The position numbers were made by a program, and so were the translations under genes. A stretch of DNA of 37,219 bases, from positions 1 through 37,219 of the forward strand of contig NW_005434403.1 of NCBI RefSeq assembly GCF_000315625.1, read 5' to 3'. The DNA is from Guillardia theta CCMP2712 (lineage: Eukaryota > Protista > Cryptophyta). This document shows, one piece after another, positions 3,177 through 35,247 of this stretch (the stretch's first letter is position 1; each line of letters begins with the position of its first letter). The notes under the pieces were generated by a model. It was not told the DNA's origin and searched no databases. It saw only the letters and a list, made by a program, of their open reading frames with translations.

Positions 3177-3945
3177 AAGAAGAGCATGTCTTGCTGTTTG
3201 TTGCTCAGTCGAACATGTCAATTCTCCTTCAGAAGTGAATGAATGGTTGAATGCGATTGTACAGGTTTCAAATGAGGAGGAGGCATTTGAAAAGAATAAC
3301 TCATATTTACGTCACTTGGTACAAAACAATCTACTCACTCACTAAGACACGAGATCTTCACTTCTTCACATCCTTGCAAACAAAACTACATCTCAAATTC
3401 GAACGCGAATTCAGAAAGAGATGAACAATCACGCTCGTTTTTAACAGATTCTTCGTTCTCTCGTTGACTCCTCTGTAAACTCCTCCAACGTCGCCTCTTC
3501 TCCTTCCTCTGTGCTCTTCCCCATGTCAGAATGATCGGTTTGCTGACAATCCTTGCACCCATGCTGCCTTTGGCGGTTTGGCGGCGGAGGAGCAGGCCAT
3601 GGAGGAAGCAGCGGAGGAGGAGGATGATAAAGCAGAAGAATAATGTTTGTTCTCGGAGAAGGGAGCAGGAGGGGAATTGAAAATCTTTGTTCTGGGGGAG
3701 GGGGGGGATCAGGTGAAAAATGTTTGTACCCACGAGGGGAGCACATCGAAAACGTTTGTTCCCAGGAAGAGGAGGCTGATGCTACGACCAACGTCGTGAG
3801 AGGAGAAGGGAGGGGAGACAGTCGGGATTTTGAGATCGTTTGTTGTCGATCAAGCACAACAGCAACCCGTCTTGCTTCTGGACTGCAACTTCGACTCGTC
3901 AAACTGTCTCTAGTGAAAATGATAAGAACATGAAATGAATCCTCC

Positions 3946-5504: not shown

Positions 5505-6714
5505 ATGCAGGTGAAGGGGCTGAGAGGTGAGATTCTTGCTACTGTGGTCATGGTCTCACGAGCATCATACTCCAGCTCTCTGGTTGCTGTCCTTGTGCTC
5601 CGCTGCCGTCCTTGCAGAGGAGGCCTCCACGAGCAAGGACGAGTCGGGGGAAAACAAGATGTTCAGTGTTACAGCCTTGTTCATTTGCTTCCGAGAGGCG
5701 CTGGAAGGGTGCGTCATTATGTCCCTACTCCTCAACATGCTGCACAAGACAGGGTTCGAGATGTACAAGAAGTGGGTTTGGATCGGAGCGATAGCGGGTA
5801 TAGTCGCCTTCGTGCTCGTGGGAGCCATCTTCATCAGCGTCTTCTATGCAATCAAGTCAGCCGTCCCCGACGCCTTCATGTACGTGTTCGAGGGCCTGTT
5901 GGCTCTGTTTGCCAGCTGCATCCTGACGGCGCTCGGCCTCAACTTCCTGAGGATGAAGGATCTAGAGCGCAAGTGGACGGAGAACCTCTTCCAAGGCAGA
6001 GAGAGCCTGCCGGAAATACCGCAGGACGTGGGGTACCTGAAGAGGAAGTACCTGGAGCTGAAGGCGAAGCTTTCGATCAAAAACCAGGCGATCGATGACG
6101 AGGCAAAGAAGCAAGGGCTGACATGGTCGATGGTCTTCTTTATTACCTTCTCCTCTATCTTCCGTGAGGGGGTAGAGACCGTTTTCATGCTGCTCTTCGT
6201 CAACTCAGACCCTGCCGGGCTGGCCATCGGAGGGATCGTTGGGATCGTTTGCGGGATCGTGTTCGGGATCATGGTGCTGCTGGTGGGGAGATACTTCCTG
6301 GTTGACATCTCCACCTTCTTCCATCTGACCACCATCTTCATCCTCTTCATCGCCGCTGGACTGGCACGCTACTTCATCCATGAGTTCGAGGAGCTGGGGG
6401 AGGTACGGGCTAAGACTACCAACGACCCTATCATCCTACGCCCTCTCTACGACCTGACGGCCTCTTGGGGACCCGGGTGGTCTCAGAACTCCGGGTGGGG
6501 TGCGATAGCGAAAGCCCTGGTGGGGTATACCCACAAACCGACCATGCTGGAGGGGCTGTGCTGGCTGGGGTACTGGGAACTGATCATCATGGTTATGCTG
6601 CTGAGGTACAAGAGGGGAACCCTGTTCAGCAAGTACGTGGCAGGAAGGGAGGAGAGCTCGAGCTCTGTGGGCTCAGGAGATGCGAAGGTGAGGAGGGATC
6701 AGCTGGCAGTGTAA
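5505..6714 (+). CDS. FTR1: High-affinity iron permease, FTR1/EfeU family
   Basis: ATG 5505 and a 49-nt intron 5527-5575 give the signal peptide MQVKGLRALWLLSLCSAAVLA. Two RExxE iron-binding motifs (FREALEG, FREGVET), about 7 hydrophobic helices, C-terminal 'LVGYTHKPT..E...W.GYW' motif; stop TAA 6714. Confidence 0.93.
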
Positions 6715-6882: not shown

Positions 6883-9017
6883 TCAAGACAGGTCAGAAGG
6901 GTCGTCCTTCAGAAACTGAATGCCCTGGATCGCGACTCAGCATAGCACCGAGCAACGGAGGAGGAGCGAGTTACCTCTGTCTCTGCGCCAGCGTTGAGGA
7001 CTGGAGAGCTGCCCCCTTCATCGTCGTCCTCAGCTTTGCTCTGCTAGTACGTCATCTCAAGGGTCGGGGAGCAGAGGAGCGGGACCCCTTCTTCCTTCCC
7101 CTGCTCAACTCCACATCCATTCACCCTTGCGCGTTTAGTCGGCCTCTCCTCCTTCTCCTCCTCCTCCTGCTCGCCAGATGTCAAATCGAGCTCAACTAGC
7201 GCAAACAGCCCACCTGACAGGTAGCAGAGGACCCTCCCACGTCGCCCGACTTCTCTTCCTCCCCCTTGCCCTCCACACCGTTCGGTGAGGGCTCGTTGGA
7301 CCGCTCGTGGTGCTCTTCCTTCTCCTCGTAACGCTGCTGATCTTCCTCCCGTAGCCTCTTCTGCCTCTTCGACAGCTCGCTCTGCTCGCAGTATCCGTAC
7401 AGATGCTGCGACTTTGACTTGCCGCAGTTCTTACAAGTCCTGTTGCCTCCGAACAATGTCCACAAGAATCCACGGCCTTCCCATCTGCCCAGCGCCGTCA
7501 GACTGGCTGCCGGACTCGAGGCAGGGGAGGGGAGGAAAATGATGGAGCGGAGAAGGAGGACGAGAGTAAGAAGGGAGGGAGGAAGCCTGAGGGTTAGAGT
7601 GAGAAGCGGGAAGAACGGAAGGAACCGAGGGATGCTGGCGAAGGGAGGGCAGCAGGAAGGGAGACAATGGGAATGATACAATGAGGAGAGGATGATGGCG
7701 AAAGGGACAGGAGGGAAACAATGTCTTTCCTGCTCTTCGCGTCTCTGTCCTTGCACTGGATGCAAGCGAAAGTTTCGTAGACTAGCAGTCCATGTCCTCG
7801 CGCCTGGCATGAGGGAGATAAGGAGGAGGAGGAGAACGGACGAGATCGTCATGATCAACTCACACACTGAGGGAGGGAAGCAGCGAGTCCAACCGAGGCA
7901 AGACAAACCAAATTACATTCAGAAAGCTGTTGATTCATCACATTCAAAACTCACATTCTGAGATTCATGGGTCAGTGAGCAAGATTGAACATCCGAACAA
8001 ACTTACACAACACTAGCAGCCGGGAGGACGTGAAAGTTGAAACACGAGCGAATGTCAGGCACAAAGAAATTCGAACAACTTGATTTGATTACCCACTGAA
8101 AACCAAAACGACATGTCAGAATGTGAACACGACAAGATTTACTTCCTTACATTCTGCACATGAAGGAAGTTTGTGACAATGAAGGCAGGAGATTGTGAAA
8201 CAGTCAGTAAACATCTTGCTGGATGTCAAGAACAAAAAGCTACCAGCTGCCGAGCAAGTCATTTTCAGATCCGTCAATGAGTCCAAGAGAGCGGAGGAGG
8301 CAAGGGAGGAGGGGAACGGGGGGGGGGGGGGGAGGGGGCGAGGGGGAGGGGAAGTGGGGAGGGGATGGGGAGGGAGAGGGGAGGAGAGGGAGAATAGGGG
8401 AGAAGAGATGATAGCATGTCAAACATCACAGAAAGGAGAAGAGATCTCAGAATTCACTTACCCCCTGATCATACAGTCAGGAAATACACAGTGGCGAGAT
8501 CGGTACGATTCAAGCATTCTAGTCAGTTTCTGCCATTCAAAGACATATTGACTCACTCCCTGCATTGAGCGACAAGATGAGATAGATATCATCAGGTGAG
8601 ATCATGACGCATGCTCAGGTAAGACAAGTTGAAAGAAAGAGTATACCGCCTGAGTACGCGCGGTCATGGGGGATCACAAGAGCGAAAGGCGAAGCCACTC
8701 ACGCATTTGTTGGCGTCGTCGCTATCCACCTCTACGATGAGCTACAAAATTCTTAGTGATGCACGCATGAAGGATCTCAGCCCTCGTTCTGCTGCTCAAT
8801 CATGAACTACGCTTCACTGTAACCTTTCCCGATTCCCCCAGCATAACTCTGCTTCCTCAATTTCTGCTCCCGCATCTCCTGACCTGCATCTCCTCCTCTC
8901 CGCTGCCCTCCTCGCCCCCGCTTACTCTTCCTTCCCTTCTCTCCTCCTCTCTCCTCCTCTCCCTCTCCTCCCCTCCTCCTCCTCCTTCACCTTGCATACT
9001 TCGCATGGCCACGGCAT
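6883..9017 (-). CDS. Cys/His-rich putative zinc-binding protein assembled from single-codon micro-exons
   Basis: Exons 9017-8991, 8741-8703, nine micro-exons and an exon starting at 7803 give MPWPCEVCKLIVEVDSDDANKCAGGLNWCCNCARGHGLLVYETFACIQCKDRDAKSRK. A later exon encodes TCKNCGKSKSQHLYGYC followed by charged/acidic segments. The junction across ~7720-7490 and the stop position are uncertain. Confidence 0.6.
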
Positions 9018-18883: not shown

Positions 18884-20210
18884 CTTCCCCCCCCCCCCCC
18901 TCTCCCTCCCTCTCCCTCTCCCTCCCTTCCTCCCTCCCTCTCTCTCCTTCCTCCTCCTTCTCATGTCCTGTCTCCTCCTGTCCTCTACCCTCCTCCCCTT
19001 CCCTCACCTTCACGCTTGATCAAAAGTTTCACCTTCACCATGACAAACGAGCAGCAACTGATATTATTTTTACTCAAAAGATTTACTGAAAAGATTTACT
19101 CAAAGTTAAGTTAAATCCATGTCATGATAATCGGATCGGAAGCCATGCGGCGGTCCTTGTTTTGTTGTGATTCAGAATGATGATAGAGTCTTCCTCCCAA
19201 GAGCGAACTTGGGACAGTGACCATGCAGTCGTTGACGTGTCTTTCCGATGTCACTGGAGCGAAGTAATTCGAGCAAGGATCATCGGCGGACAGGGAGCTC
19301 GGAGAAGGCTGGAGAGTTCTTGTAGAGAAAGAGCAAGCAGATTCGTTTGTTTCTCTCTCTGTTTACTTCAATCATGACTTGAGCATCATAAAAACAGCCA
19401 ACTGTTCGTAATGGTGGGTCCATGGGATGGAGAAACTTTCTTTCTGGTCGGAGCTGCCGCGCCCAAGACCAGCCTGCGTAACCGTGATAAGTGAAAATAC
19501 AACAGCATATTGAGGTGTTGTTCGGCTTCGTCGATCAGGATACTACCTTGTGGCTCGTTGGCTTTATCGAAAACACCGTTTCTGTTTCCGGGTGTAACGA
19601 GCAAGGAGAGGGCAAGAGTGTAGATAATCTTACAACACAATCTTTAGATCCCAAGAACTATTAGTCTCCTCTCCTTACGAGCGCTTCTTCCTCCCTCCTC
19701 CTCTTCGCCTCTCCCGGAGTCCTGGCCGGCATCCCCCAGGAAGGCTCTCCCTCCTCAGTTGGGTCTCGGTCTCAGGCAGCAGGGAACTGAGCCACCATCT
19801 CCTTCCCCTTCTCAAATCAGCACGTCCATGTTTCCATTACGCGTCGAGGGGGTAAACTCCTCCAAACTCTTCCCTGAGGGACACCGGGGTGGGTCAGCAA
19901 GTTGACCATGTATAGGGGTGAGGTCGATTTGACTAAGAGGAAACCTAGTGAATGAAGCGAGTAGTGTGGGTGTGTATGACATCAGAAACATGCGAGGGGT
20001 GGGGTGGCGAACCACACCCTGTCCTTAGTCCGTACTAGTGACCATTTTTGAAACTCCCCTCACCCCCACCCACCTATCCCTGCCCCATCTACCCCACCCC
20101 TGGTAATCACGGAGTCTACAGGGTGTCCTGCTTCTTTTTTTGGAGGTATCACGAATTCAAAAGGAACAGATGTTGTCACAAGAGCTCAATCATTGACGAC
20201 TCACAGCAAC

Positions 20211-23200
20211 ATGCAGCAGTCGAATGTCAATCCTGTGTTGACTCGGGACGAAGTTGTTGAAACATCTTACGAAGTTGAAACATCCTCTGCGAAAGAAAGT
20301 GATGGTGAAAACCAAGGGAAAACATCCTTCCTTGCTCTCTTCCGTTTTGCTAGTGCGATGGACCGCTTTCTTATCGTCGTATCCCTCATCGGCTCTGTTG
20401 CAACTGGTGCAGCGCTCCCTGTGTTCACCCTCTACTTCAAGGACCTCATCGACGGGGGGTTCGGTGCAGGATCGCAATCTGCCGAGGAGGTCAACAAAGC
20501 TGCTCTCAACTTCCTCTGGATCAGCCTTGGCCTGTTCGTGTGTGGCTCCATCTCCAACGGCTCGATGCTCTTGGCCGCTGCAAACCAGGGGTCTCGGCTG
20601 AGAAGGCAGTACGTGAAGGCCATCTTGAGGCAGAACATCGCCTGGTTTGACACTCAGAAGACCGGAGAGATCACCACGTCGATCGAACGCGACTGCTCCA
20701 ACGTGCAGGGAGCGATCGGCGAGAAAGCCGTGCTCTTCGTGCACAACATGTCCACTTTTATCATTGGCATTGCGCTGGGCTTCTGGCAAGGGTGGCAGAT
20801 GGCGTTGGTGAGCTTGAAGCAGTGGTCGTTGACAAGCTCCCAACTGACTGCGAAGCTGCAGGTGATTTGTGCCTGTCTGCCGCTGCTGGCCGGGGCCGGG
20901 GCTTGGATGGCCAAGAATCTCGCAGGGATTGCTTCCAAAGGAGAACACGCATACCGCTCTGCAGGTGTGGAGCGAGCTTGTTGGTGGGTGAGTGTGCTGA
21001 CGGGCCTTGGCTGAGCAGGAGCTGTCGCTGAGCAGGCCATCACGGGGATCAGGACCGTAGCCTCTCTGCGAGGAGAAGAACGAGAGAACCAGAGGTTCTG
21101 CTCGAACCTGGACGAGGCGCTAGACATGGGGATCAAGAGGGCTCGCACAAACGCGCTGGGAATGGGAGTCGTGTTAAGCACTACTCTTTTGCCCTACGCC
21201 CTAGGGCTTTGGTTTGGGAGCTGGCTGATATCGCATGGCATAACCAACAGCCGAACAGGGTTGCTCTACTCGGCCGGAGATGTGATGCTGGTCTTCTTCG
21301 CCATAGTGCTGGGAGGATTCAGCCTCGGTCAGGTGGGGCCATGTGTGCAGGCGTTCATGAAGGGCCAGGCGTCGGCCAAGAAAATCTTTGATATCATCGA
21401 CCGCAAGCCTCCCATTGACATCCAAGACCCGTCAGGTGACAAGCCAGCTGGCGTGAAAGGTGATCTCTGCCTCAAGGGCGTTGCCTTCACCTACCCAGCT
21501 CGTCTCGATGCTCCGATCTTCACCTGCCTTAACCTCAACATCGCAGCTGGGCAAACGGCAGCCCTAGTCGGAGCCTCAGGAAGTGGAAAAAGCACTGTGA
21601 TCCAGCTGCTGCTTCGCTTCTACGACCCGGACGAAGGGCAGGTCATGCTGGACGGGAGAGACCTGCGAACTCTCAACGTGAAGTGGCTCCGCGAGCATCT
21701 GAGCATCGTGTCCCAGGAGCCGATCCTGTTCGCGGTCTCAATTGCGGAGAACATCAAGTATGGCAAGCCCGACGCCACGATGGACGAGATCAAGAAGGCA
21801 TGCGTGGCGTCCAACGCTCACTTGTTTGTCGCCGGGCTTCCGGACACGTATCATACGCTGTGCGGGGAGAGGGGGACGCAGCTCAGCGGCGGTCAGAAGC
21901 AGAGGATCGCGATCGCGCGCGCCGTCATCTCCAATCCCAACGTGCTCCTGCTGGACGAGGCCACGTCGGCCCTGGACTCGGAGAGCGAGAAGCTCGTACA
22001 GGACGCGCTGGACAACCTCATGGAAGGGAGGACCGTCGTGGTGGTCGCTCATCGCCTGTCAACCATCCGCAATGCGGACAAGATCTGTGTGTTCAAGACG
22101 GGAACCATCGTCGAAGAGGGCACGCATGAGGAGCTTTATGCAAAGGAAGACGGCTTCTACCGGGAGCTCGTCTCGAAGCAGATGGTGGCAGGAGAGGCAG
22201 CGATTGGAGGGGCTTCGGCAACAGCAGAGAAGAAGATGCCCGCAAACGACGTGGCGCAGGGCTCATCAACAGCAGTGAAGTCTCCTGAGGTGAAACTCAA
22301 GGAAATGAGCAATCAGGAACAGCAGAAGGCAGAGAAGGGCTACCTGAAGCGAGCCTTCAAGCTCAACAGCCCAGAGTTCTTCCCCTGGGCGTTGACGGGG
22401 TCGGTCGGAGCCTGCATGAACGGAGCGGTATATCCTGTGCTTGCACTTCTGCTGACGGAGATGCTTGCGGGCTACAGTCTGTGCCAGGAAAAAGAAGGCA
22501 TAGATCCTTTCAATCCGGGCAAGAAGGTTGTAGTCTCTTATTTCATGGATGCAAAGAGCTGCGGAGCATCCTGCCTATACCTCGCCACCCATCAGTGGAG
22601 TGGTGAATGTTTGAGTGAGAATAACACAAAGATTTGGTGCTACCAGGTTGCTAATTCTTCGGCCGGACATTACATTCGCTTCTACAGCAGCCAACCCGAT
22701 GAAGCCGTAGCAGTAGTTCAAGATCTCCGACTCCATGATATTGAAGCACTCGTTTCTACAACTCTACTCCTTCGGAGTGATGGGCGAGCATCTCACGCAG
22801 CGCCTGAGGAAAATGTGCTTCGCCTCCGTGCTCCGGCAGGACGTGGGCTTCTTCGACTACCCGGAGAATGCGAGCGGCAGCCTGACGACTAAGCTTGCAA
22901 AGGACGCTTCCTTGGTAGAGAATGCGGTGGGATCCACAATCGGCCTGATGATCCAAAACCTGGTCGTCATGGCAATATCCCTGACGATCGCTTTCATCCG
23001 AGGGTGGATGCTGACTCTGATCTGCTTCTCGACGTTCCCGCTGATGGTTGCTGCCAATATGCTGCAAATGAAGTTCATCGCGGGCTCTGGTGGCGACCTG
23101 TCTGCTGCTTATGAGGTAAGCGATGGCTGTAAGGTTCTCTGTCTAGAGAAAGCTTCAACTTGTAGCATCACTTATGAGCAATCTCGTGCTATTGACCTGG

Positions 23201-25436
23201 TTTTCTTGGCAGAACGCGACAGCGATAGCGAGCGAAGCAGTAGCTGGTTTGCGGACTGTCGCTGCATTCTCAGCAGAGGAGCAAGTCGAGAATCTTTACG
23301 AGGAGAATCTCAAGTAAGATTTGTTATGAATGTTTCAGCAATTGAATGACCGGTTACTCGTCGACAGATCAGAAAATGGCGCACAGCAGAAGACAGCTTT
23401 GGCAGCTGGCCTCGGGCAGGGCTTTTCGCTTTTCACCGTCTTCTTCCTCTACTACTGCGGGTTTGCAGGAGGAGCATACCTGATGAAACACGAGGGCTAC
23501 TCTTTCAAGGATGTGCTTCAGGTAATGACAAGGATGCATCTGTTTGCTGTAGAGGAGGGCAGGAGAGAGTTTGAAAAGGATGTTGAACAACTTCAGCTTG
23601 ATAGCTCAAGTCTCATGTCAGGTGTTCTTCACGGTAACGTTTCTGGGCATGGCAGCTGGCATGGCTGGAGCAGTCGCGCCAGACATCGCCAAGGGAAAGC
23701 CTGCTCTGATTTCCATTTTCAAGCTGATCGACCAGGTAGCTGATTGTGAGAAGACAAGGAGGCTAATGGCATCTACAACACCAACAGGAGCCGAAGATCG
23801 ATGTTAACGATCCTGCTGGCCAGAAACTCCAACGTGTAACGGGAAAGATCGAGCTGAGGGATGTATCCTTTAATTACCCAGCTCGTCCGGACGTGAAAAT
23901 CTTGCAGAATCTGAATCTCAGTGAGTGCTTCCTGTACTGATATTCTCTTTACCCTCCTGGCCATCAGCCATTCCTGCCGGGAAGACATCAGCGCTTGTCG
24001 GGGGGTCGGGCAGCGGAAAAAGCACCATCATCTCCCTTATCGAGCGCTTCTACGACCCTGATAGCGGCAAGGTGAGTGTAGAGGTGAAGGAGAGCGATGC
24101 ACAGGCTCAGTACTAGGCAGATCCTGCTAGACGATGTTGATATCAAGCAGCTCAACTTGTCGTGGCTACGGTCGCACTTGGGGCTTGTCAGCCAGGAGCC
24201 GGTAAGAAGTGGGTTGGAGAGGGAGAGGGAGAGGGAGAGGGAGAGGGAGAGGGAGAGGGAGAGGGAGAAGGGGAGCGAAGGAGGGAGAGAGAGGGCAAGA
24301 GGAGGGGGAGGAAGGAGCAATGGAGAGAGCTTGGAGAGAGAGAGAGAGAAAGAGGCAAGAGGAGGAAGCGAGGAGCGAGGACTAGATCCAGTAGGGAGGG
24401 AAGGAGGAGAAAGAGGAGGGGGGGGCGAGGGAGGAGATAGAGATCGAGACAGGAGAAACCCAGAAAAGAGCCGCAGAGGATGGAGAGGCTAGAGAAAGAA
24501 GGGAGGGAGGGAGGGAGGGAGGGAGGAAGAGAGGAGGTTGAGCGCAAAGGGAAAGCAGGATGTTACATTAACAGGAGGTTGTAAGATATTGTTTGCCACT
24601 TCCATCTTTGAGAACATCCGATACGGAAGGTCGAGCATCTGATGTAGGGACCCAGTTGACCAGCTAGCAGGGAGGACGCGGGGGAGGGGGAGGTGATTGA
24701 GGCCTCCAAGAAAGCCAACGCGCATACCTTCATCATGGAATTTCCTGGCCAGTTCGAGACGCAATGCGGAGAGAAAGGAACGCAGATGAGCGGCGGGCAG
24801 AAGCAGGTGATCTTGTATCTAACTGATCTCACACTGATCTCTTGCATTTTCCTCTTCCTCTCCCCTCGTCCTCGGCAGAGGATCGCGATAGCTCGTGCCA
24901 TGGTTGCAAACCCAAGCGTGCTGCTCCTGGATGAGGTGAAAGCTGTTCTTGCTGTCCTGTTCCAGCTGATCCTTGAGCTGACAGGCAACGTCCGCGCTTG
25001 ATTCGCAAAGCGAGATGCTCGTACAAGAAGCTTTGGACATCCTCATGGTCTGTTGGAACATGCGGCTCTTGGTATCATGTCTGAAGGTGTTGCTGCAGGT
25101 TGGAAGGACAGTTGTTGTCGTGGCTCACAGACTGTCAACCATCAAAGTAAGCAAGCACCCGTCGTGCTCCAACATGCGCTTATGTTGCATCAGAATGCAG
25201 ACAAGATCGTCGTCATGTCGGGAGGAGAGGTTGTTGAAGAGGTGATGCGATATCAGAAGTTATCTCTCTCATGGCTGAAACTGAGCTGATTGGACCAGGG
25301 CAAACATTTTGATCTGCTTGCTAACACGACTGGACCGTACGCGAAGCTCATCGCTCATCAGGCAACTGATGTCACTCTAGAGACCATTTTTGATGAGACA
25401 GACAGATGCAAGCATGATTCGGCGAAGACCTCTTGA
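20211..25436 (+). CDS. Full-size ABCB (MDR/P-glycoprotein-like) transporter, TMD-NBD-TMD-NBD
   Basis: ATG 20211; [17 protein letters not shown]1: [49 protein letters not shown]2: [46 protein letters not shown]. Stop TGA 25434-25436. Confidence 0.95.
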
Positions 25437-25659: not shown

Positions 25660-26699
25660 AACCACCAACACTTGCTCCGCAAAAGCTGCTAAACATACCA
25701 AGCTCACTCCCTGCCAGTCAGCCAGGAGAACTTCTACCTGTGCCCTTTGCAGGAGCCGAGCAGGAATCGACCATGCCCTACTTGAGAGATTGAGCTCCTG
25801 CAAGCTGGAGGAGGCGGACAGGCTCTGTCTCGTCGATTTCCATAGCCGCTCCTCTGTCGTCCTCGTCCCTTAAAGCAGAACATGTTTCTTACTGCAGTCA
25901 CACCGCATTTCTCCTCCACCCTGGCACCCAATGAAGGAGTTCCTAGGAGGACGGCAATGAAACGCAGGGTCCCCGTACACCGCCTCCTGACTACACCCAT
26001 CCCACTCCGCCGTCAAGCTTGCTCCACGGTGGTTTGCTCAGTTCCAAAGAAAACGCAAAGCCATCTGTATCTGCAGCGATGGGAGGGAAAGCCTTAGTTG
26101 GATAAGGGTTACGTAGCTAGCGCGATGATCCGAAATCTTCTGTTGTGCCGACGGAGCTTCCGGACGTTGTTGTAGGGATGAATCTTGGTCACGTATATTA
26201 CCCTTCGCATTACACCAACTCACATCCAACCGAAGATGTTTGCTGATTGATATGCGAGAACCCCTTTAGATAGATCAACAGGCGAGAATTGAGCACAGAG
26301 CGATAGTTCTTAGCTATGAAATTCTCGACTAAATACAGGGTCATGAAAGTTGCATTGGCTCACTGCAGAAAGCTTACGGTGCGCCGGCCTCGTTGAGGAG
26401 GGTCATCAGACACTCTTTTTCAGTGATACCTGAAAAAGCATGAACATCAACCAATCAACTGAGTAGATTGCGATTTCTTACGAGTGGACTTGGACGTATC
26501 ACAAGCGTAATTGCCCGTACAACAGCTCGTCTGGGCAGCAGTGGCTGTCAACGCATGAAGGCACCCAGTATGCTGCGATGCGGAATGTTTTCAAGGTCTT
26601 GCAGTCGAATTCAGTGTGATAATCTCTCAAGCCACCCAGCACAGTTCCCTGGTCCCGGACAGAATTGTCGCTGGAAATCGCAGCTGCAGCCGCGCCTGA

Positions 26700-29053: not shown

Positions 29054-29108
29054 ATCGAAGTAGAGACGTACAGCTCCTCACAAGCTGATACCTGACTCTC
29101 ATCGGGCT

Positions 29109-31695: not shown

Positions 31696-32328
31696 CATGC
31701 CAGCGATGTCGCTTGCGGGCTGACGAAAGATCCGCCCTGGACATGCGTTCAAGTCGGACGCCCCCCAGCCCACCCCCCGCCCCCGTACTACTGAGGCTGA
31801 ACTGAGAGCCCGGGGCTGAGCCGCGGGGCCGGTAGGGTGACCGTGACACGGACGGACCGTACTCCCGGACGCACGGCACGGCCCGGCCTGCCTGGGCCGA
31901 TTCACTTTGAGCCGACCCGCCTCAGCGCAGGATAGAAGTCAGGAGGCCGACGATGGTTTAAAGGTAAGAGAAGACGATCAGTCGGACAAGAGCGAGAAGA
32001 GGAAGAGAGGGAGGAAGTGCGAAGAGGAGGAGACAACAAGAGCAGAAGAGTGCTTGACAGCTTCAAGACATGTTCGTGCGATGGGGTTGAGAGGAGAGGT
32101 TGTGCCGAGGAATCGATGAAGCGAAAGTAAGAATCCTGAGGTTTCATGTGATGTGAAAACGCGGATCGAAGAATCCAATGGGCAGTGGCGATGATGATGT
32201 AGCGATGACGATGTAGCGATGACGATGTAGCGTACGAAATGATGACGGATACTTCAAGTCCGAACAAACAGGAAGGTTGTCTTGTGAACATTTTCTCTCT
32301 CTACAGACCGAGTGCGGATTACCAGAGC

Positions 32329-32936
32329 ATGTCAGGGAACGGACGGCTGATCCTTACCTTGCTCTTCGCTCTGTGCGTGCTGGACCCAGCATGCGAGGCG
32401 TTCACCAACCTCTCGGTGAGAGCGCTGCTCTATCTCCATCCTCCTAGCTCTCCTGACGTGAGCAGAAATACAATGTAGGACAAGGAAGAAGGACCGCGAT
32501 AAAGCAGCAGATCTCCTACCCTCGACCAGCAAGACGCAACTTGTTTTCACGACTTGTATGCTACTCTACTCTGACCGTCTTGGAACGCTGACACGCTCAC
32601 GCTGACATAGAAGTCCTCTCTGCCTGTGGCTGCTCCATGGGCTGAAAACATCGCCAGCTCCATTGCGCAGGTCCTGCCTGATCCTCTTGCTCAAGATGTC
32701 GCCTGCACTATGTTGGGAGTGAGTGTCAGACGAGGATGTGAGAGGTGCTGTTGGAGGTTGTGGTGATGTTTGTGTCAAGGTTGTTGGAGCAGGAGCCTGG
32801 CTGGCGATCTGGAGCAACCTGGCCAAGTATGGGATGATCGACCCTAAAGTGTCGCGCAAGGTTCGTGATTACCCGGAAGAAGTGATGGTGGTGGTGGTGA
32901 TGATGATGAAATGGAGGAGGAGGAGCAGCAGGAGCA

Positions 32937-32982
<46 letters not shown>

Positions 32983-35247
32983 GGGTTTGGGGTGAGGAGG
33001 AGATTGTTGAGGTAGAGGAGCAGGAAGACTTTAATGATGATGAAAATGCGGGATGACAAAGTTAGAGACGGAGACGAAGATGACGTTGTCTGTCAGATTG
33101 TTCATTGCGGGAGTGGACCTCTCTTCCTCCTGACCTGGCCTCTTTTCTCCTCTTCGCACACAGCTCCTCTACTCGCCTCCATCGGTCTTTCCGTCCAGTC
33201 CGCAGCCGACTCTGACGAGCTCCCTGCAGTCCCGACCATCAACGCTCTGCGCCTTGTGAGCGCGGGAGGAGGAGTAGGAAGAACATTGTCGGCACTTGGA
33301 TTCACTCAGGCCGGAGAGGAGGAGGGTCGAGGGGAGAGTGACGGGAGGAGGTAGAGAGGGCAGTAGGCAAGCAGCGTTCTGATGTGATGATGCAGACGAA
33401 GAGACTCTGGGTTGGTCACAGCAATCTCTCGGTCAGGGAGGTCAGAAGAGGTGAGAAGCTGTGCTGGAGAAGGGAGGAAAGGCGGGAAGATGGGAGGGAG
33501 GGGAGAGAAGGAGGAGGGAGAGGAGGGAGGGGAGGGAAGGAGGAGGGAGAGGAGGGAGGGGAGAGAAGGAGGAGGGAGAGGAGGGAGGGAGTGGAGGGAG
33601 AGAAGAGACAAGGATGGCGAGATGTTGTGTGGTTGAGAGGGAGGATATATGGGGTGAGAAAGGAGGATGGGAGGAGAAGATGCAGAGCAACTCGACGGTG
33701 AGGAGGGAGAAGGGTCGAGATATCAGTCAGCCGGTGAGCGAGAGGGAGGAGAATAACCACCATGCCGCAGGTCATGCAGGGACCGCTGATCTACACTCTT
33801 GTCCTTCTGTGGGGAGTTGTCGGCGGTTGGCAGCAAGCTATGAGCATCACGGCTATCACGCAGGTGCTGCCTGCTCTTCCTGCCCTGTGTGAGCTGAGAG
33901 GGGGGCAGATGGCTGCTGGGGATGGACTGGCGGACATTGTTGGGAGGAGGTGAGGAGTTGCAGCTCTAGAGTTTGTCAAAGTGAGAGGGAGGGCAGGTGG
34001 GGAGTAGTCAAGTGGCCCTGGAGTGACAGCAAGAGTATCGCCGGGTCGCTCGGATTCGTCGTCGGGGCATCCGTTGGTATTTGCGAGCTTTGCCTACCAT
34101 CCTCCTCCTCCTCCTGCTCCTGCTCCTGCTCCTCCTGCTCTCCTCTCCTCTTCTCTCTCCATCAGATCCTCTCTCTGCTCCTCCTCCTACTCCCCTTGGT
34201 TCCGACTCAACTCCCCAACTTTCCTTTCTACCTGCTCCAGCTCCACCAGAGCATCGTCTCATCTCATCTCCCATACACTCGCTCCTCTTCTCTGCGACTT
34301 GTCTGTCACGTCTGCTCTGCTTAACGCTCCTCTCACCCTTGGCTCTTTTTCCTCAGTCATGATGGCTGAACTTTTGTGGTTCAATGCCTTTGGCCTTCTC
34401 TCTTTCAAAGGGACGGAAGTTTATGATAAGGTAAATCCTCCCCCTCCCTTACATCCTCCCTACCCGGGGGCCCCACCACCACCTCCTCCACAACCCCCCT
34501 CCGCCACTTCCTCTCCCACCACCTCCTCCTCCACCTCCTCCCCACTTCCTCTCCCACCACCTCCTCCTCCACCCCCTCCCCACTTCCTCTCCCACCACCA
34601 CCTCCTCCACCCCCTCCCCACTTCCTCTCCCCACCACTACCTCCTCCACCCCCTCCCCACTTCCCTCTACCCATCAGCTTTCCCCTGACCTCCCCCATCC
34701 CCTTCCTCTCTACCCATCAGCTTTCCCCTGACCTCCCCCATCCCCTTCCTCTCCCTGATTGTTTCCTTCCACCAATACCTTTCCCCCGCGCCGTCTTCTT
34801 CTCTCATCTATCTGAACCTCCTGGTCCTGATCTCTTGCTCTGTGCTCCTACTTTGTCCTCCTCTCTTTCGTCGCCTCTCCTCCTCCCTGCAGCCTCGCCT
34901 GCCTACCCTGCCGCTCTTGCCTGACTCTTGTCACTGCTCCCTGTCGCCTCTCTTCCTTGTCCCTCCTCCCTCTCTTTCTTCCTCTTCCTCTCTCCTCCCT
35001 CCCTCTCCTGGTCTCCTCCCTCTCCCCCCCCTTTCCCTCCTTGACGTCTCCTGCAGGTCATCCTCATCTCCCTTCTCTGCGCTGCAGTCGAGCTCATCCC
35101 CCTAGACAAGGTCTGTACCAGCCCTTCTCCACCTTGCCCTCGAAGTCCAGCTGAGCTCCAGCTCAGGTCCTCCCTGGTCGTCTCGGGGACGACAACGTGA
35201 CGGTGCCAGCGGTGGCGGCTGTGCTGGCGCTGCTGCTGCTGCGATGA
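32329..35247 (+). CDS. VTE5: Plastid-targeted phytol/farnesol kinase (VTE5/FOLK family, dolichol kinase-cytidylyltransferase superfamily)
   Basis: Signal peptide MSGNGRLILTLLFALCVLDPACEA-F. Spliced motifs: IDPKVSRK-IVHCGSGPLFLLTWPLFS; LVTAISRSGRSEE-VMQGPLIY; MAAGDGLADIVGRR-WGVVKWPWSDSKSIAGSLGF; AAVELIP; DDNVTVP. Stop TGA 35245-35247. Confidence 0.9.

Follow-up and report, generated by a model that had tools for sequence, protein, structure and literature searches.

What kind of gene can draw ten amino acids from some 900 nt of apparently non-coding DNA, almost one codon at a time, and to what end? The question is raised by a locus on the minus strand of contig NW_005434403.1 of Guillardia theta, within the window of 37,219 nt that was analysed as a whole. 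A preliminary description, made from the sequence alone, had proposed that nine consecutive micro-exons of one codon or a codon pair contribute to a Cys/His-rich domain and that any subset of them might be skipped in frame. We found all nine exactly where it had placed them, flanked by AG and GT, in phase 0 and with introns of 49 to 215 nt. The gene model consists of the following features, where C22, C33 and C19 denote paralogues in the same genome.

8991..9017, minus strand: coding exon 1, nine codons with the first CxxC; the nine-codon size is also found in paralogues C22, C33 and C19
8703..8741, minus strand: exon 2, 13 codons, the last encoding Cys22; the paralogues likewise have 13 codons ending in Cys
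8647..8649, minus strand: micro-exon 1, GCG, Ala23; motif and P0001
8557..8559, minus strand: micro-exon 2, GGA, Gly24; motif and P0001
8462..8464, minus strand: micro-exon 3, GGG, Gly25; motif and P0001
8244..8246, minus strand: micro-exon 4, CTG, Leu26; motif and P0001
8151..8153, minus strand: micro-exon 5, AAT, Asn27; motif and P0001
8093..8095, minus strand: micro-exon 6, TGG, Trp28; motif and P0001
8007..8012, minus strand: micro-exon 7, 6 nt, Cys29-Cys30; a 6-nt Cys-Cys exon also closes most other chains
7955..7957, minus strand: micro-exon 8, AAT, Asn31; C22 and C33 likewise devote an exon to Asn
7864..7866, minus strand: micro-exon 9, TGT, Cys32; fused with the next exon in C22 and C33
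7730..7803, minus strand: exon 12, residues 33-57, with the last CxxC of the module
7485..7729, minus strand: intron of 245 nt, which, judged from the protein, must read GA...AG (non-canonical donor) to yield P0001
7214..7484, minus strand: exon 13, small CxxC-x6-H-x4-C knuckle-like motif and a charged stretch
7086..7166, minus strand: exon 14; the next intron (45 nt) is retained in isoform P0003
6975..7040, minus strand: exon 15; the next intron (50 nt) is retained in isoform P0002
6883..6924, minus strand: exon 16, including the stop codon

The decisive evidence comes from P0001, a complete open reading frame of the MMETSP transcriptome assembly, which was the only match to the 90 residues of exon 13 in a search whose query did not contain the micro-exon chain. 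Its residues 23 to 32 read A-G-G-L-N-W-C-C-N-C, identical to the ten residues predicted from the DNA and in the predicted order, and are flanked by the products of exons 8741-8703 and 7803-7730. Since P0001 was found via the downstream exon alone and yet carries these residues, we regard it as the main proof of the micro-exons. The translation of the 16-exon model, built from the coordinates above, equals P0001 over its 209 aa with no difference, and 10 of these 209 residues are encoded by micro-exons. Eight tripeptides taken from the ten residues were looked for in the forward frames between 8702 and 7804, and none has a contiguous coding sequence there. Isoforms P0002 and P0003, which belong to the same transcript cluster as P0001, keep the whole chain and differ only by intron retention near the 3' end. 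The window gene is therefore real and expressed, and its nine micro-exons are joined in order in assembled transcripts, the splicing evidence being at the protein level and derived from assembled RNA; look-ups by protein for the nucleotide contigs of P0001, P0002 and P0017 came back blank.

The preliminary description had also suggested a genome-wide comparison with shuffled sequence; ours covers the chain region. From 8702 to the last acceptor, at 7804, there are 14 YAG trinucleotides, nine of which are followed 3 or 6 nt on by a GT[AG] donor, as against a mean of 0.63 such motifs and a maximum of 5 in 5000 dinucleotide-preserving shuffles. With strict GTRAG donors the count is 6 versus 0.034 in shuffles, and the opposite strand of the chain region holds no strict-donor micro-exon motif. 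As the region was picked after the fact, the shuffle test does not serve as the main proof.

The chain introns of the window gene, all in phase 0, measure 53, 87, 92, 215, 90, 55, 80, 49, 88 and 60 nt, so that nine of the ten lie between 49 and 92 nt and the remaining one has 215 nt. Outside the chain, the gene has ordinary short introns of 45, 47 and 50 nt. The preliminary description was right about the lengths of the chain introns but not in likening them to the others in the window, since their median, taken over four genes, is 83 nt. As for the 245-nt intron at 7729-7485, the preceding exon ends in CAG, the sequence continues with GAAAGA, and the intron is flanked by direct GCAG repeats; it may represent a GA-AG intron, or else reflect a difference between alleles or a fault in the assembly.

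Chains of this kind recur in the genome. When the 669-contig, 87,145,349-base assembly was searched with a strict pattern for three successive one-codon exons, 108 matches were obtained genome-wide, many of them tandem repeats, versus 1 in the reversed control. Among the matches listed, 11 are clear non-repeat loci, and all 11 belong to the same family: in nine, a 6-nt Cys-Cys exon follows downstream in the same orientation, and in the remaining two the next large exon begins with Cys-Cys. Looser triple patterns with GTR donors were discarded, being swamped by tandem repeats and leaving 3-nt and 4-nt spacing unseparated. The three paralogues that we read (C22, C33 and C19) share a nine-codon exon 1 with CxxC and a 13-codon exon 2 ending in Cys, followed by the chain, which comprises 8 micro-exons in C22, 16 in C33 and at least 33 in C19; after it come Cys-Cys-x-Cys and, 13 residues on, the final CxxC. 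The longest chain that we noticed, on C105 at 50038-57160 (plus strand), extends over ~7 kb and ends in a Cys-Cys exon at 57160; judged from its spacing, it would contain about 80 one-codon exons. Exon 1 of both L026 and L030 (the C22 and C33 paralogues) has a GC donor, and 6 of 61 chain introns end in an AAG acceptor.

The encoded module follows the pattern CxxC-x13-C-x(6 to 40)-CCxC-x13-CxxC, in which the eight cysteines are conserved and the variable part is the loop from Cys22 to Cys-Cys, 6 residues long in the window gene and 40 in P0017. The domain is thus cysteine-rich as first described, whereas the histidine included in the original motif is not conserved in the paralogues. Protein searches with P0001 residues 10 to 92 or 100 returned P0001 itself only and no homologue outside G. 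theta, three weak matches having been dismissed as unrelated repeat proteins, and two metagenome scans were blank.

Evidence at the nucleotide level is available for a sister gene, from L041, a 1411-nt JGI contig that encodes P0007. In this RNA contig the last part of exon 2 is followed by a single retained intron of ~83 nt and then by joined loop codons; genome alignments cover bases 1-120 and 159-600 of the contig, while bases 121-158 align nowhere contiguously. The codons CAT/TGG, GAA/CAC/TTC and AAA/CCG/GGA of L041 are found on C228 as one-codon exons at 31711-31826, 32144-32365 and 32680-32890, in this order, and the two triples are unique in the genome and lie at positions predicted beforehand. 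In this way 8 of the 13 loop codons were located, and the exon spacing of about 107 nt fits 13 evenly spaced codon exons over the 1494-nt gap. Two codon-triple patterns with gaps of 68-98 nt had given no match, because the C228 introns are longer. Retention of the upstream intron in L041 fits the chain introns being removed first. The chain of L041 matches C228 and its downstream part is closer to C149 (99% versus 97%), a mixture that may reflect an assembly chimera, an allele or gene conversion between paralogues.

How the spliceosome might handle such exons can be approached from the intron signals. Branch motifs of the CTGAC type, to which the preliminary description had drawn attention, are indeed present, but mostly far from the acceptor. 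We examined 50 chain introns of 70-110 nt, drawn from four genes, assigning branch sites by the CTRAY motif. CTRAY occurs 28-48 nt from the donor in 27 introns, versus 4.2 (maximum 13) after shuffling, and 8-25 nt from the acceptor in 4 introns, versus 3.6. The last 45 nt of these introns contain 10 AG dinucleotides where 81 are expected, while near the donor there are 60 versus 70 expected, so that AG is not depleted there as it is at the 3' end. Such a pattern suggests that splicing is probably intron-defined, each intron having a strong donor and, at the customary distance of 30-45 nt from it, a branch site. Most chain introns add an AG-free spacer of 40-55 nt before the acceptor. This spacer may make up for the exon length that is lacking, and the acceptor would be set by whichever AG comes first after the branch point. 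A chain intron can be pictured as the head of an ordinary intron plus a spacer, probably giving the spliceosome room. In the window gene, the branch motif of two introns (55 and 49 nt) lies 14-20 nt from the acceptor, and in three others none stands out clearly, which indicates that the spacer is not obligatory; the two short introns without a spacer are presumably removed in turn. Neural microexons of animals are likewise preceded by an extended distance from branchpoint to acceptor (median 45 versus 34 nt; PMC12871342), and their displaced branch site appears in G. theta in a stronger form, regular across the whole run.

Among paralogues that are 92-99% identical downstream, the chain span varies from 963 to 2583 nt, the chain lengths being taken from alignment gaps, and three C228 intron starts, from introns seen in part, resemble one another while their codons differ. 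The span differences and the look-alike young introns point to codon-plus-intron units being gained, lost and altered at the DNA level. Such units would arise by tandem duplication and disappear by loss, always in frame, and the loop between Cys22 and Cys-Cys would thereby grow, shrink and change. Recent duplication of the window gene's own units was considered and rejected, its introns being no more alike than shuffled ones; since they are unrelated to one another, we read this gene as an old copy, probably an old, short-loop member of the G. theta family.

The module itself belongs to no family that we could recognise. No Pfam match was obtained for P0001:10-209 (the window domain without residues 1-9) at E<=0.1, nor to the module for the whole paralogue domain P0017:1-95 at E<=0.05; the ESM Atlas search with P0001 residues 10-92 yielded no family, its best score of 0.83 being at chance level; and AlphaFold single-sequence models were unusable (mean pLDDT 40.5 and 47.5). 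The eight cysteines, with a CxxC pair at either end, hint at two zinc sites. In these features the module resembles RING, PHD, FYVE and zinc-ribbon domains, although its spacing fits no standard pattern. Downstream of the module, C19 and P0017 carry a Roc GTPase (Pfam), C22 gives a weak SPRY match (Pfam), and C33 shows a coiled coil and a kinase-like stretch (by inspection, in a fragment without a Pfam match); the window gene has no signalling domain there, only the small knuckle and an acidic tail. The cysteine pattern and the Roc, kinase-like and SPRY partners make it most likely that the module is a two-zinc domain displaying a variable loop, which would serve signalling proteins as a head for sensing or binding, the sensing role being suggested by the partner domains and by analogy with brown algal ROCO genes. 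Knuckle-like CxxC..H..C motifs occur both inside the variable loop of P0017 (residues 41-58) and downstream of the module in the window gene (7484-7214); kinship between the exon 13 knuckle and the P0017 loop insert was not accepted, the similarity of the pair being weak (E 0.027).

On this evidence we consider it probable that the window gene is an expressed gene whose nine micro-exons are all normally included, spliced by intron definition with a spacer, shaped by unit duplication at the DNA level and encoding a two-zinc loop module. The opposite extreme, that the motifs are chance occurrences or recursive splice sites whose codons never reach the mRNA, has practically nothing in its favour beyond the fact that support for the window gene is at the level of proteins from assembled RNA; the ten predicted residues stand in order in P0001-P0003, the codons of the sister gene were mapped at the nucleotide level, and the shuffle test agrees. 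Recursive splice sites, which leave no exonic sequence in the mRNA, are ruled out by the presence of the codons in P0001. The combinatorial use envisaged in the preliminary description, in which in-frame skipping of codon-exon subsets would derive many loop variants from one gene, as in the schistosome micro-exon genes (MEG), seems unlikely to us. It is true that the exons are all in phase 0 and made of whole codons, so that any skip stays in frame, and that brown algal ROCO genes alternatively splice their repeat exons (PMC11378527); the phase, however, is equally required by unit duplication in the DNA. The ten residues are kept in all three isoforms, the sister RNA contig fits inclusion of 13 out of 13 loop codons, and the residues at stake include the conserved Cys29, Cys30 and Cys32, without which the domain should not hold together. 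Rare 3-nt variants are collapsed in de novo assembly, and the assembled isoforms accordingly leave skipping unsupported rather than refuted.

The chain might also be functionless, a tolerated product of a selfish or mutational process by which introns of this family are inserted or duplicated at codon boundaries, and would then at most slow mRNA maturation. The short loop and diverged introns of the window gene would suit this explanation, as would the incomplete splicing seen in L041, which retains the intron preceding the chain, and the fact that conserved positions (Cys-Cys, Asn, Cys) are split by introns as well, with gains and losses between paralogues. We nevertheless judge it quite improbable, because the chains are limited to one family and to one site in the domain, and codons differ where introns stay alike, the opposite of neutral drift (a comparison of three introns seen in part). 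A bolder possibility, which we put forward tentatively alongside the reading preferred above, is a diversification system of codon resolution for immune-like receptors in a unicellular alga. A hypervariable loop, held by an invariant zinc scaffold and linked to Roc or kinase signalling, would have each residue in its own 3-nt exon within a unit of ~85-105 nt, and recombination or gene conversion among dozens of paralogues would add, delete and swap residues in frame, possibly with skipping too.

Two known systems invite comparison. Schistosome MEG form a variable multigene family with strings of very short exons, which annotation misses and whose lengths are mostly divisible by three; the exons are mostly about 15 bp (range 3 or 6 to 81) and alternatively spliced, the introns 0.1-5 kb, and the proteins secreted, with a signal peptide (10.1101/2023.06.21.545858). 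MEG proteins derive mainly from the short exons, as against 10 of 209 residues in the window gene. The window gene likewise has a series of short symmetric exons, nine in phase 0 and of 3 or 6 nt. However, the G. theta exons are uniformly one codon long, with introns of about 50-110 nt; their chain forms only a short insertion within a cysteine module, with no skipping in three assembled isoforms; the N-terminus of the window protein is, by inspection, rich in Cys and acidic residues without a hydrophobic run; and MEG have no sequence relation to the G. theta family. Brown algal ROCO genes have an exon-modular variable region on Roc proteins, show fast gene birth and death and have been proposed to encode immune receptors (PMC3341825, PMC11378527). 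Here the likeness lies in the exon-modular variable region and in the Roc domain of several G. theta members, but in the brown algae each unit comprises an entire LRR or TPR repeat, with one LRR per exon under diversifying selection, and in G. theta it is a single codon. There the variable part sits in the N-terminal cysteine module, is also fused to non-Roc proteins and, in the window gene, occurs without Roc. The G. theta chain thus works like an exon-modular variable region and is a member of neither the MEG nor the ROCO-LRR system. Microexons elsewhere are isolated: 27 exons of 3 nt are spread over 26 genes in Coprinopsis (PMC12230235), and those of animals, plants and fungi occur singly or, at most, as two neighbours (PMC8831610), whereas G. 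theta has runs of 8 to at least 33 in succession.

In the literature searched, outside which most subscription papers including the genome paper fell, we found no description of one-codon-exon runs or of the G. theta family, cryptophytes included. Accurate spliceosomal joining of such long runs is a natural test of minimal exon size, and the many replicate introns in one genome offer a test bed for intron definition, branch-point anchoring and first-AG scanning. The chains also suggest a new route to loop evolution, by one residue at a time and without frameshifts, in genes resembling signalling or defence receptors. BLAST does not see such chains, and gene predictors probably miss them too; the family is therefore likely misannotated and may be hidden in other protists.

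Other features of the window may be recorded briefly. An FTR1-family iron permease (Pfam E 2.6e-30) is encoded at 5527-6714 on the plus strand, convergent with the micro-exon gene; the two stop codons are about 170 nt apart and the 3' ends may overlap. At 20193-23349 (plus strand) there is an ABC transporter with membrane and ATPase domains, ABCB1-like by inspection. Isolated YAG-NNN-GTGAG motifs are found off the chain at 29084, 25710, 25131 and 3341 on the minus strand and at 33731 on the plus strand; the codon of the motif at 3341 is a stop codon, while the one at 25710, immediately preceded by a branch-like motif, may mark a genuine single micro-exon.
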